Source: Paragordius varius
Lineage: Eukaryota; Animalia; Nematomorpha
Direction: 5' to 3'
Length of the DNA: 64,000 nucleotides
NCBI GenBank assembly: GCA_964247055.1
Contig: OZ176054.1
Coordinates: 6,324,001 to 6,388,000 of the forward strand
The notes beneath the pieces are model-generated. The model had not been told where the DNA came from. It was given only the letters and a program-made list of their open reading frames with translations, and ran no database searches. How positions within the stretch are numbered: position 1 is the first letter of the stretch; every line of letters begins with the position of its first letter. Made by a program: the position numbers and the translations under genes. Positions 12,001 to 62,300 of this stretch are shown piece by piece.

Positions 12001-12569
12001 ATAATTAAACCAGTAAAAATATAACTCTACTTAATAGATAATAAATAAAAATCTATTACCTCAATAATTGGAGTTTCATTAATTATTAAATCGCTTTCTA
12101 CTATAAATGAATCTAGTTCTGTGGGTATATTTAGATGGGAATTAAGGCCAAAATGCTTGTCTAAATTTTTACGCTTTTCAAGCAAATCGGCTTTATCACA
12201 TTTTTTATCTAAAATATAAAATTATGAAAATAAACCATCTACTGATTTGCCAGAATCTAGAGTTTGATATCCATAAAAATTTATTTCCTCACACTCTCTT
12301 CCGTCAAAAAGATCCAAACCATATCTGAGAGTTATATATGGTTGACTGAGTAAACCACCAAAGATTTGAGATGCCGTAATTCGGACATCCCAATTTTTGT
12401 GAAGTATTAATTTTGTTAAATATCGTAAAATTTCCTCTTGATTCTGAATATCCAACACAGAGTTTAGATAACTAATCGCAGAATTTTTGATTTTTGCACT
12501 ATTGCTATGCTCCAATAACGAGAATATACGATTTATGCTACAAATAAATTTTAAAAATTACTTTTCCAT
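1..12569 (-). CDS. BTAF1: TATA-binding-protein-associated factor 172 / Mot1 (SNF2 ATPase), multi-exon, 3' part beyond the left edge
   Basis: Exon 1 is 12569-12562 (ATG GAA AA), followed by a 24-nt intron. Exon 2 (12537-12236) reads MENINRIFSLLEH...KNWDVRITASQIF, matching the Mot1 N-terminus. Further exons resolved by hand: 12208-12060, 11487-11134 (KRWETRHGSLL...DRFGDYVGEE), 10564-10250 (VISPTRELAAQ...WQIQHSGLLGLKY), 9962-9783, 8624-8268, 7763-7647, ~7291-7032 and 6779-6567. More exons correspond to the ORFs at 5469-6248, 4077-4586, 3567-3848, 2840-3500 and 1900-2157. SNF2 helicase motifs LRSYQQQGIVWL...GILCDDMGLGKTLQ, SLVICPSSLVYHW and VISYDTAR lie at ~900-130. Not every internal exon boundary was resolved. 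Confidence 0.93.
10172..10216. repeat. (TA)n microsatellite (shorter ones near 20371-20402, 42731-42751 and 55520-55542)
   Basis: Direct reading. Confidence 0.95.
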
Positions 12570-12615
12570 AAAAAACCATACACCCGTCTTTTCTCTGCTA
12601 GTCTCTCAGGTTGAA
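12570..12615. promoter_or_regulatory. 46-bp bidirectional spacer between BTAF1 and METAP2
   Basis: Divergent ATGs lie at 12569 (-) and 12616 (+). Promoter function is inferred. Confidence 0.7.
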
Positions 12616-59275: not shown

Positions 59276-59300
59276 CAATGTTTTGCGTTCAGGCCTTACT
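59276..59300. promoter_or_regulatory. 25-bp bidirectional spacer between UQCRQ and SLC35F (74 bp if the SLC35F start is ATG 59350)
   Basis: The UQCRQ ATG at 59275 (-) is fixed by the conserved MGxEFG. The SLC35F ATG at 59301 is in frame after a 28-nt intron. Confidence 0.65.
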
Positions 59301-62300
59301 ATGAAGTTATGAAAAGATTGTGATAAATTTCAGGTGCACATCAATTTTTATGAATCAATTTTTTCAAAACAAATTACATTCCATCAACTTTCAAAGCCTG
59401 TATGTGTCGGTCAAATCTAAGTAATTATTAAATTATATTATTTAGAAATTTATGGGAAAATATATTATTGGGTCAAGTAATATCATTACTAATTTGTACC
59501 ACCGCTGTCACTAGTCAGGTTTTAGCACAATATTATTCCCTTAACATTCCAACCGGTTTATTTTTTCCCTAAATATTAGCTCAAAATTTTGTCAATTATT
59601 TACTTTTAGCTACATTATTTAACTGTGCCTTGTATGTTAAACGTAAATCTTTCGCATCATCAAGATACTCTACCTATACAAAATATTATATATATGATAT
59701 ATTACGTAATCGTGGTCTAAAATATTTTATTTTGGCTCTCATTGATGTTGAAGCCAATTATTTGATTGTTAAAGCTTATCGATATACCACATTAACCGCC
59801 ATCCAGGTTATTTTTACATTTTTTGTCTCATGTTGTTGAATTTTCAATAAAATTTTTGGTGGCTTTATATAATTAGTTTGTTGATCAGAGTTAATTGTCA
59901 TGTAGCGTTTTTATATAATTTATTGACGCAAACAATAAATATATAAATACTTCAAAAATAATTAATCTTATCTATTACTAGTTTAAAAATATAATTTTTA
60001 TTTATATGATTAAATATTTTGCCGAAACTGTTAGATTGTTTAATTATACCCAATTGTAATACTTTCATTCATTTTATTAATAAGAGATAAATTTATATAT
60101 AAAGTATTAATCATGGAATAAAAGAATTTTTTTTACAATGAAACCGAATTTTTGCTGATTTCTAGCTGTTAGATTGTTTGACTATACCAGTTGTTATGCT
60201 TTTATCCATCCTATTTTTACGGGTCAAATATCGAATGTCACATTTTTTGGGCGTTCTCATTTGCGTTTTTGGGGTCGGTTTTCTCATTTATTCTGATCGA
60301 CAACAACGACAAAAATCTGGACAGGCTAAAGGGGACCACGATCTACTTACCAATGGTTAATATTATATTGTTTAAAATAAAATTTTTAACGGATTATACA
60401 TTTTTTGTTATTTGTATGTAAATTAATTTTATGTAAATTACGAAAAAACAATGAAAACAACATTGTTACATGATGAATTATATATGTGCAACGTAAATAC
60501 ATTGTATGAATGAACTCTAAACAAAAGTATATTGTATGATTTTGTCATTTTTGAGTGGTGTTTAACTTTGTTTTTTTATACATCAATCAAAAATATATAT
60601 GATATACCGTTTCTCAGTCAAAATAAACGTTTTCCCAGTCAATCGAAACGTTTCCCAGTCAATCGAAACATTTTCCCAATTAATAAAAACGTTTTTTCAG
60701 TCGATAAAAACGGTTTTATTTTGATAAATATCAAAACAAGAATATAAAAACAACTTTTAACCATTATCAGCGTAATATATGGATATTATTTTTAATAAAA
60801 ACACAATTATTGAGTGACAATTTTTCCAAGTATCCAGTGCACAATCATTAATGACTTATTCTTTAAAAGTTATATTTTTGAAATTTGTGATGTTTTTTAG
60901 AAAATATTTTTTATTTTATCGATGGTTCGCATTAATATTTGCGGAACTCTTCACAACAGTTAATAAAAATGTCAAGTTTGTCGATAAAAATACTGTCAGA
61001 AAAAATAACTAAACGAAAAATTTTTTTGATAAACATATTTTGATTTAAAAATTTATTAAAAAGATATTTGACTAAAACAAGGGTGTCAAACTAAATGCCT
61101 TCGCGGGGCGCATTTTTAACTTAAAAAAACACCGTTCCGCATTCGAAATATATACGGGCATTCACATAATTTTTCGATAAATAAGCTTGTAAAATACAAA
61201 CACAATATAACATTTTTTTAATTACCAATTTAATAGACTCATTCATAATAATTGCGTAAGAAATATGAATATTACTAAGATTTTGTGGGCATATTTTTGC
61301 ATATGGATTTCCAAATTTTTCGCGCGCCGCACTAAGATACTCCTAAGGCCGCCTTAGGCCCCCGATGAACCAAATGATAAATATTATAAAATTAGGGTAA
61401 AATATGTTTAAGATCCAATATGAAGTGTTAAATGATCTTTGAGATAAAAATGGTATATTTTTATAAATTTTATTATTTCCTCCGTAGCTATTGATTTAAG
61501 TTAGCCGCAAAAATGCGAAACATCGATAAAATAAAAATAATAACTTAAAATTTAGTTTGTTACCCTTGTTTTAGTCAAATATCCTTTTTATTAAATATTT
61601 TTAAAATCAAAAACTTTAAAAAAAATTGTAGATATTTTTTCCGACAGTATTTTTATCGACAAACTTGACATATTTAAAAACTGTTGTGAAGCGTTCCGCA
61701 AGTATTAGTGCGAACCATCGATAAAATAAAAAATATTATCTTAAAAACATCTCAAAAATATAACTTTTAAAGAATAAATCATTATTGATTGTGCACTGGA
61801 ATATACTTGGAAAAATTGTCATTCAATAATTGCTTTTTTATAAAAAATAATATCCATATATTACGCTGATAATGGTTAAAAGTTTTTATATTACTGTTTT
61901 GATATTAATCATCAAAAATACAACCGTTTTTATTGATTGGGAAAATGTTTCGATTCACTGGGAAAACGTTTCGATGACTGGGAAAATTTTCGATTGACTG
62001 GGAAAACGTTTCGATTGATTGAGAAAACGTTTCGATTGATTGGGAAAATTCGATTGACTGGGAAAACGTTTATTTTGACTTGGAAATGGTATATTTGGCA
62101 ACTATTCAAATAATATTAATTATTGTATTAACTACACTTTATCTAATATTTTTACCAACAATAAATATTCAAAAACCTTTTTTTAAGATATTGGGAACTT
62201 TTTTTCAATATTTTTGTAGTTCAATTATATTTATTTACATCTTAAGTCATGCATTTATCTTTTAACACTTGGATACAACACATTCATTTTAGTCCTTCGA

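Follow-up and report, generated by a model that had tools for sequence, protein, structure and literature searches.

Most sampled housekeeping genes of Paragordius varius lie in head-to-head pairs with start codons 17–82 nt apart, suggesting compact shared promoters

In the nematomorph Paragordius varius, housekeeping genes are arranged head to head with almost no DNA between their start codons, and this near-zero spacing is a general pattern, both real and recurrent. Seven such pairs, with spacers of 17–82 nt, lie in 264 kb of contiguous DNA and account for 14 of the 16 housekeeping genes whose 5′ end was resolved there; an eighth pair, MRPS26/archease, with a 23-nt spacer, is found on a different chromosome. 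The sequence suggests, with a probability that we place at roughly 0.45, that highly compact bidirectional promoters, shared by the two partners of a pair, drive these genes and give mRNAs with very short leaders.

Results

Three head-to-head pairs in the window

The window, which is the whole 64,000-nt stretch analysed here (contig OZ176054.1, positions 6,324,001–6,388,000), contains three of these pairs. A sequence-only reading that preceded our analysis had put 46, 23 and 25 or 74 nt between the divergent start codons, and on re-reading the DNA all of these distances proved exact.

12538–12561, minus strand: putative BTAF1 micro-intron of 24 nt (GTAAT...GTAG), with a splice phase that fits an ATG at 12569
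12562–12569, minus strand: putative BTAF1 start micro-exon of 8 nt (ATG plus 5 nt), containing the sole nearby in-phase ATG; the next one upstream (−10) is out of phase
12570–12615, no strand: BTAF1/METAP2 spacer, read as 46 nt between CAT 12567–12569 and ATG 12616–12618, with a pyrimidine tract and a CAG that ends 6 nt upstream of the METAP2 start codon
12616–12721, plus strand: METAP2 coding exon 1, start not pinned by conservation, followed by a 27-nt intron (12722–12748)
53343–53466, minus strand: TANGO2 coding exon 1, Met-Cys start, PF05742 match, exon 3′ end approximate
53467–53489, no strand: TANGO2/ZNF207 spacer, read as 23 nt between CAT 53464–53466 and ATG 53490–53492, with no AG on either strand and with out-of-frame ATGs on the plus (one, −5) and minus (four, −4, −8, −13, −20) strands
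53490–53530, plus strand: first coding exon of ZNF207 (MGRKKKK...), with a 25-nt intron after it (53531–53555)
59123–59275, minus strand: UQCRQ coding exon 1, PF02939 match and alignment to subunit 8, start at CAT 59273–59275
59276–59349, no strand: UQCRQ/SLC35F spacer, 25 nt with ATG 59301 or 74 nt with ATG 59350, with an acceptor-like tttcag ending at 59334
59350–59420, plus strand: first coding exon of SLC35F under the simpler model; a 25-nt intron comes next (59421–59445), for which a 46-nt alternative begins at 59400

Identity searches were run exon by exon on spliced models against Pfam and PDB. Residues 1–37 of TANGO2 correspond to positions 1–37 of the PF05742 profile, pinning its start, and residues 1–41 of UQCRQ (PF02939) align with residues 1–41 of mammalian cytochrome b-c1 subunit 8. 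ZNF207 gave weak C2H2 matches in exon 2 (Pfam), and its start is pinned on the basis of the ZNF207/BuGZ N-terminus, which we take to be conserved. The claim that most starts are fixed by conserved N-termini thus fails, as only these three of the six are. The Peptidase_M24 match of METAP2 (Pfam) falls in an exon later than the first, and an in-frame ATG at 12535, stop-free up to 12616, would, if used, cause the BTAF1 and METAP2 reading frames to overlap. BTAF1, recognised by its SNF2 domain and a HEAT repeat (Pfam), has a first long exon (12225–12537) without a Met, so that a start micro-exon is needed. In SLC35F (PF06027), exon 2 (from 59446) corresponds to profile positions 3–38 and the next exon to 39–112; a start at 59301 requires a 5-nt coding exon (59301–59305) and a 29-nt intron (59306–59334), whereas a start at 59350 requires neither. 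BTAF1 exon 1 had no match among solved structures, a word search with UQCRQ exon 1 and a TANGO2 exon returned no protein matches, and three matches of a TANGO2 exon in a large representative protein set were uninformative.

For TANGO2/ZNF207, the absence of AG on both strands leaves no place for an intron or leader acceptor inside the spacer. Since only these 23 nt separate two pinned starts, each core promoter must reach into the first exon of the partner unless it is the two 5′ ends that overlap, as had been proposed.

Recurrence beyond the window

All eight pairs were verified, bearing out the claimed head-to-head geometry of housekeeping genes. The 264 kb covered comprise the window and 200 kb beyond it. 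A rough estimate, with about 15 starts per strand placed randomly, predicts about 0.07 pairs per 264 kb, against the seven found. Both partners of every pair were matched in Pfam or PDB, the AIMP2 match being weak and below the cut-off (E = 0.0064). Residues 2–26 of UCHL5 match reference residues 2–26, and residues 5–39 of Sec5/EXOC2 match 5–39, which pins both starts; protein matches pin the start codons of cyclin K and MRPS26 more broadly. The starts of BTAF1, ICA1, SLC35F, METAP2, PIKFYVE and an amino-acid transporter are predicted rather than pinned, and three of these genes (BTAF1, ICA1 and, in one model, SLC35F) would begin with a start-codon micro-exon.

Two statistics that need no annotation yielded no usable distance histogram: a log-odds score on codons that hops across micro-introns overlooks true first exons (3.8 for TANGO2, 3.2 for UQCRQ), and a spliced-ORF length statistic was swamped by transposons and antisense shadows. 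As to conservation of the pairs in relatives, the single pair checked is absent as a pair in the nearest relative found, the horsehair worm Gordionus (GCA_954871325.2; archease identity 63%).

Sequence upstream of the start codons

We examined the sequence around 18 starts, 14 of them inside one 264-kb stretch and 16 of them paired. Upstream ATGs are not depleted: we count 12 against an expected 6.6 in the nearest 20 nt, and 25 against 16.5 in the nearest 50 nt; out-of-frame examples lie at −5, −31, −34 and −70 of ZNF207, at −4, −8, −13 and −20 of TANGO2, and at −10, −14 and −24 of the amino-acid transporter. At position −3 we find T in nine starts, G in five and A in two, in a very AT-rich genome with 37% A, and the +4 base is G in 10/18. 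With A rare at −3, the upstream context seems not to be read, as would be expected if it were absent from the mRNA.

In half of the paired starts (8/16), the stretch from the closest AG upstream to the start codon contains an ATG, the other eight being free of one, and the 100 nt upstream of ZNF207 and of cyclin K contain no AG. Together with the undepleted upstream ATGs and the rarity of A at −3, this intervening ATG in half of the starts implies that neither ordinary scanned leaders nor acceptors just before the ATG can be the general rule. No depletion of AG, GT or AATAAA was found in the 100 nt upstream of the 18 starts. The spacers have a GC content of 0.22–0.44 with no GC-box and no CpG rise, and no clear shared motif was found in them; CAT[AT]CAT, a motif picked post hoc, has six matches in 616 nt, compared with 0.36 expected.

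Possible local compaction in a repeat-rich genome

The genome is not globally compact, in agreement with the sequence-only reading: it contains LINE copies and repeats resembling MITEs, and one TANGO2 intron spans ~4.2 kb. Introns of 20–30 nt are confined to the 5′ ends of genes, and, taken together with the spacers, these micro-introns point to a promoter-proximal compaction zone in an otherwise repeat-rich genome. Such a local zone around promoters fits the geometry equally well as the dedicated promoter architecture that had been proposed, and it would also explain the 20–30-nt introns. Of the earlier interpretation as a whole, the geometry, its recurrence and the non-compact genome hold up, whereas the pinning of most starts does not and the pair that was checked is not conserved in a relative. 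The TGF-beta genes that it had set apart from the paired arrangement are weakly supported: two paralogous last exons (26578–26826 and 47116–47370) hit PF00019 with E-values of 0.047 and 0.011, below the cut-off, and these candidate exons are absent from the list of the whole-genome scan.

Discussion

How the paired genes might be transcribed

With start codons 17–82 nt apart, the transcription start sites (TSSs) of a pair very likely lie less than 1 kb from each other, unless the promoters are remote. If very compact shared promoters drive these genes, transcription would begin inside the short spacer or at its edges, both genes of a pair would use one common initiation region, and the leaders would measure from a few to ~20 nt. 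The upstream promoter DNA of each gene would then be the first coding exon of its partner together with the micro-intron of that partner, and the 20–30-nt introns at 5′ ends may stem from the same local pressure to keep surplus DNA away from promoters. Short leaders are favoured because, in ZNF207 and TANGO2, a scanned leader of more than a few nucleotides would first meet upstream ATGs; many animal leaders tolerate upstream ATGs, so longer leaders would still be compatible with those present. What counts against compact promoters is that two pre-initiation complexes 15–25 bp apart would exclude each other.

Normal spacing of the two initiation complexes would be regained if the 5′ ends were crossed, with each TSS inside the partner's first exon, mutually antisense leaders, and each promoter within the transcribed region of the other gene. 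The geometry permits this, and a sizeable share of mammalian bidirectional pairs has overlapping 5′ ends, which speaks in its favour. However, leaders of this kind would hold several out-of-frame ATGs overlapping the true start in ZNF207, TANGO2 and the amino-acid transporter, which is hard to square with conserved housekeeping proteins being translated efficiently, and transcription would run head-on through both promoters; we consider crossed 5′ ends unlikely, although they are the chief rival of compact promoters.

The distance between start codons would be uninformative on promoters if these were remote, the 5′ end of each mRNA being supplied by spliced-leader trans-splicing or by upstream non-coding exons through an acceptor immediately upstream of the ATG. 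Several animal phyla, ctenophores among them (PMC8527503), commonly use trans-splicing, and acceptor-like sites with an ATG-free path to the start lie upstream of METAP2 (CAG, −6, at 12609/12610), SLC35F (tttcag, −16), UQCRQ (ttcatag, ~−23), EXOC2, MRPS26, ICA1 and the amino-acid transporter. Yet the eight starts with an ATG after the nearest AG and the AG-free upstream regions of ZNF207 and cyclin K argue against remote promoters, as does the need to place an upstream exon inside the partner gene. A search of the genome for a nematode-type SL1 RNA gene (Rfam SL1), which a leader of another kind would escape, gave no match; the published 44-nt leader of the ctenophore Hormiphora is absent from the genome, and our literature search found no work linking spliced leaders with Nematomorpha. 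Remote promoters are accordingly improbable in our estimation, and we see only the slimmest chance that the spacing is an artefact of start calling, the true starts lying downstream of those called, or in coding exons missed on the upstream side, with real distances that are ordinary. The six unpinned starts named above would leave room for such an error, but UQCRQ, UCHL5 and Sec5/EXOC2 match their references residue for residue at the N-terminus, TANGO2 matches from profile position 1, and the 23-nt spacer of TANGO2/ZNF207 is bounded by two pinned starts, so that miscalled starts are largely refuted for four pairs.

Comparison with known systems

Animal bidirectional promoters usually leave 100–200 bp plus two leaders. 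The pairs described here share with them the divergent orientation, the enrichment for broadly expressed genes and the large share of genes involved. They differ in that bidirectional promoters are defined by TSSs up to 1 kb apart, whereas here start codons are separated by 17–82 nt, in a genome with kilobase-long introns and many transposons, and with no GC-box or CpG rise. TSSs 1 kb or less apart are reported for roughly a third of the genes in Amphimedon and for 32% in Drosophila (PMC4773876).

The frequent +4 G (ATGG in 10/18 starts) is a feature shared with genes of the TISU type. The TISU consensus around the ATG is SAASATGGCGGC, and its full form was found in 0/18 starts, nine of which carry T at −3. 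TISU serves both transcription and translation in housekeeping genes with very short leaders (PMC2518114, PMC3177215); some 4% of human genes carry it, with no tie to near-zero spacing of gene pairs (PMC2518114).

Spliced-leader genes with outrons, as in nematodes and ctenophores, resemble the present ones in that the position of the ATG is freed from that of the promoter, and acceptor-like sites do lie near some starts here; they differ in that half of our starts lack an ATG-free interval from acceptor to start, and neither SL1 nor the ctenophore leader was found. Giardia-type protist promoters combine an AT-rich genome with leaders of a few nucleotides, initiation near the ATG and bidirectional activity. 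The AT-richness is shared, and the mode of initiation may be; unlike the genomes of these protists, which are small and almost intron-free, the present one belongs to an animal and has long introns and densely packed repeats.

In a more extreme form of the short-leader arrangement, most housekeeping mRNAs would be nearly leaderless (<~10 nt), transcribed from back-to-back initiators between the two start codons, with each first coding exon acting as the partner's core promoter. We regard this as rather unlikely; if true, this would be a metazoan whose mode of initiation and selection of start codons resemble those of protists. Such a near-leaderless mode may be linked with the 20–30-nt introns near promoters, for instance if early U1 sites shield transcripts in a genome that abounds in poly(A)-like signals.

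If the TSSs do lie within the 17–82-nt spacers, two promoters, their leaders and their start codons would fit into less than the footprint of one pre-initiation complex, and these loci would test current ideas on the length of DNA that a core promoter requires, on start-codon choice when leaders are very short and on the use of coding sequence as promoter. For annotation, programs that assume leaders and introns of the ordinary kind will get 5′ ends wrong in this genome, including putative start micro-exons and introns of 20–30 nt.

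Head-to-head start codons in the window

Direct reading of the window (26.6% GC, no Ns; part of a 110.56-Mb assembly with 44 pieces) gave the following spacers, counted in nucleotides between the two start codons of each head-to-head gene pair.

Spacers of the three window pairs (CAT, minus-strand start codon; ATG, plus-strand start codon)
BTAF1/METAP2: CAT 12567-12569, ATG 12616-12618; 46 nt
TANGO2/ZNF207: CAT 53464-53466, ATG 53490-53492; 23 nt
UQCRQ/SLC35F: CAT 59273-59275, ATG 59301-59303; 25 nt, or 74 nt to ATG 59350-59352

All three agree with the sequence-only reading, and the identities of the six genes were upheld by Pfam scans of single exons, spliced models being searched exon by exon. 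Besides TANGO2, these scans recovered the UcrQ family for UQCRQ, the SLC35F family for SLC35F, Peptidase_M24 for METAP2, an SNF2-related domain and a HEAT repeat for BTAF1, and weak C2H2 matches for ZNF207.

The further claim that conserved N-termini fix most of these starts holds for TANGO2, UQCRQ and ZNF207, and is weak for BTAF1, SLC35F and METAP2. Residues 1-41 of UQCRQ align with residues 1-41 of mammalian cytochrome b-c1 subunit 8, and TANGO2 residues 1-37 match Pfam profile positions 1-37. The MGRKKKK N-terminus of ZNF207 is, as far as is known, conserved across eukaryotes. Judged by these N-termini, the start codons of TANGO2/ZNF207, the tightest window pair, are therefore fixed on both sides. 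The first long exon of BTAF1 (12225-12537) has no methionine, and its start rests on a putative 8-nt micro-exon (12562-12569) and a 24-nt intron (12538-12561), which are in phase; the next upstream ATG is out of phase. SLC35F exon 2 (from 59446) corresponds to profile positions 3-38, and the start at 59301 requires a 5-nt coding exon and a 29-nt intron, neither of which is required by the start at 59350. The N-terminus of METAP2 is not conserved, and an in-frame ATG at 12535 lies upstream of 12616 with no intervening stop. Its use would bring the METAP2 frame into a 35-nt head-on overlap with that of BTAF1; the 27-residue extension looks non-coding.

Putative start-codon micro-exons occur in BTAF1 (12562-12569), in ICA1, on the same contig to the left of the window (L010, ~2240), and possibly in SLC35F (59301-59305). 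Their pattern is ATG plus 0-5 nt, then a 24-29-nt GT-AG intron and an exon without an in-frame methionine. An acceptor fused directly to an AUG-ending leader would be in frame for ICA1 and out of frame for BTAF1.

Tight pairing beyond the window

We extended the survey to the 200 kb left of the window (pieces L009-L028) on its contig (C5, of which the window covers 6324001-6388000), 264 kb in all, plus one locus elsewhere, annotating 5' ends by hand from stop-free segments and from Pfam and PDB matches.

Further head-to-head pairs (start positions, spacer)
ICA1/PIKFYVE: C5 6136240 / 6136258; 17 nt, tentative; ICA1 requires a first exon consisting of ATG only and then a 25-nt intron; the first exon of PIKFYVE is in phase
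TAMM41/UCHL5: C5 6153768 / 6153851; 82 nt; UCHL5 residues 2-26 align with human 2-26
EXOC2/AIMP2: C5 6215798 / 6215865; 66 nt; Sec5 residues 5-39 align with 5-39; AIMP2 match weak (E 0.0064)
amino-acid transporter/cyclin K: C5 6289928 / 6289979; 50 nt
MRPS26/archease, the eighth pair: another contig (L029), 1310 / 1334; 23 nt

Of the 16 housekeeping genes whose 5' ends could be resolved in the 264 kb, 14 belong to tight pairs; by our own estimate, random placement of ~15 starts per strand would yield ~0.07 such pairs. The two others are SAP30BP (6199987, recognised by eye) and AFG3L2 (6254716), neither of which has a partner start inside 100 nt, and ORF lists showed no obvious partner for the fascin-like, phosphatase-like, K2P channel and TGF-beta-like genes. 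The AFG3L2 start codon sits in a palindrome, CATATG (L022 ~714-719; C5:6254714-6254719), so that an opposite-strand ATG directly adjoins it; the ORF from that ATG has 11 codons only, and no partner gene was recognised. In the cyclin K exon region (L025 5979-6446), the open frame runs through two short inserts that human cyclin K lacks; they resemble unspliced, stop-free micro-introns, so ORF length overstates exon length there.

Sequence upstream of the starts

We tabulated the 100 nt before each of 18 start codons. Upstream ATGs show no depletion, with 12 in the nearest 20 nt and 25 in the nearest 50 nt, against 6.6 and 16.5 expected from composition. The 23-nt TANGO2/ZNF207 spacer holds an out-of-frame ATG at -5 on the plus strand and four ATGs on the minus strand, at -4, -8, -13 and -20. 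Position -3 is occupied by T in nine starts, G in five and A in two (genome A, 37%), and +4 is G in 10 of 18. In 8 of 16 paired starts, an ATG intervenes between the start codon and the closest AG before it; for ZNF207 and cyclin K, the 100 nt contain no AG. Counts of AG, GT and AATAAA match composition, and spacer GC of 0.22-0.44 indicates no CpG-island-like rise.

The motif CAT[AT]CAT occurs six times against 0.36 expected over 616 nt of spacer and upstream sequence, a post hoc count uncorrected for search space, in which one site contains a start codon by construction and one lies upstream of archease in the horsehair worm Gordionus.

Regions with CAT[AT]CAT
window 53467-53489
L025 ~5929-5978
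L011 ~9769-9850
L016 ~5960-5986
L031 (Gordionus) 5980-5995

It recurs in spacers, frequently inside TCATACATT or ACATTCAT, and is also found before the unpaired SAP30BP gene. The complement of the motif includes an ATG, and part of the upstream-ATG excess is explained in this way.

How the paired genes may be read

Taken together, the upstream-ATG, AG and start-context data favour very short leaders that would begin inside the spacer. Conventional scanning along a leader of at least 20 nt would, in about half of the genes, encounter out-of-frame ATGs. Overlapping 5' ends of the paired genes are worth weighing beside this, as upstream ATGs are tolerated in many animal mRNAs; we consider such overlap the less likely alternative, at roughly one chance in four. 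An intron or spliced-leader acceptor immediately before the ATG cannot, on the upstream sequences, be the general rule, given the ATGs intervening in 8 of the 16 and the AG-free ZNF207 and cyclin K; for METAP2, SLC35F, UQCRQ, EXOC2, MRPS26, ICA1, PIKFYVE and the amino-acid transporter, an acceptor just upstream of the ATG is possible. Rfam SL1 has no match in the assembly, which also lacks the 44-nt leader of the ctenophore Hormiphora californensis, whose mRNAs are for the most part trans-spliced (PMC8527503).

The paired arrangement resembles animal head-to-head genes with shared promoters, which are common: in Amphimedon about one third of genes, and in Drosophila 32%, have starts no more than 1 kb apart (PMC4773876). 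Unlike in those pairs, it is start codons, not transcription starts, that lie 17-82 nt apart here, and the new element is this scale of spacing in an otherwise repeat-rich genome with kb-long introns. For housekeeping genes with the short leaders proposed here, the closest parallel is offered by mammalian TISU genes (PMC2518114, PMC3177215), but the TISU consensus is not present at the 18 P. varius starts.

Comparison with Gordionus

Gordionus is the nearest relative found (archease 63% identical; next match 50%). Its archease gene (L031, GCA_954871325.2 OX940785.2:8792304-8804847; 6001-6544 of that region) has an AT-rich upstream region. No partner start was seen within ~300 nt, nor did MRPS26 give a match within 6 kb, so at least this pair, the one compared, appears not to be shared. 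The region is repeat-rich with 25.7% GC, like the P. varius genome, and archease is split between exons 1 and 2 as in P. varius.

TGF-beta-like genes and a minisatellite

The genes previously read as TGF-beta are two diverged paralogues, with weak family support.

TGF-beta-like paralogues in the window
23286-26826, plus strand; last exon 26578-26826
44689-47370, plus strand; last exon 47116-47370

Both last exons end in a TGF-beta-like CxC C-terminus, and their PF00019 matches (E 0.047 and 0.011, respectively) are below cut-off; a whole-genome TGF_beta scan found about five loci, neither paralogue among them. A minisatellite with NRNVFPV / ETFSQSI-type repeats, which stay open on both strands in several frames, occupies 60514-62115, in an SLC35F intron, and occurs again 110 kb away, at ~C5:6275460-6275930 (L024).
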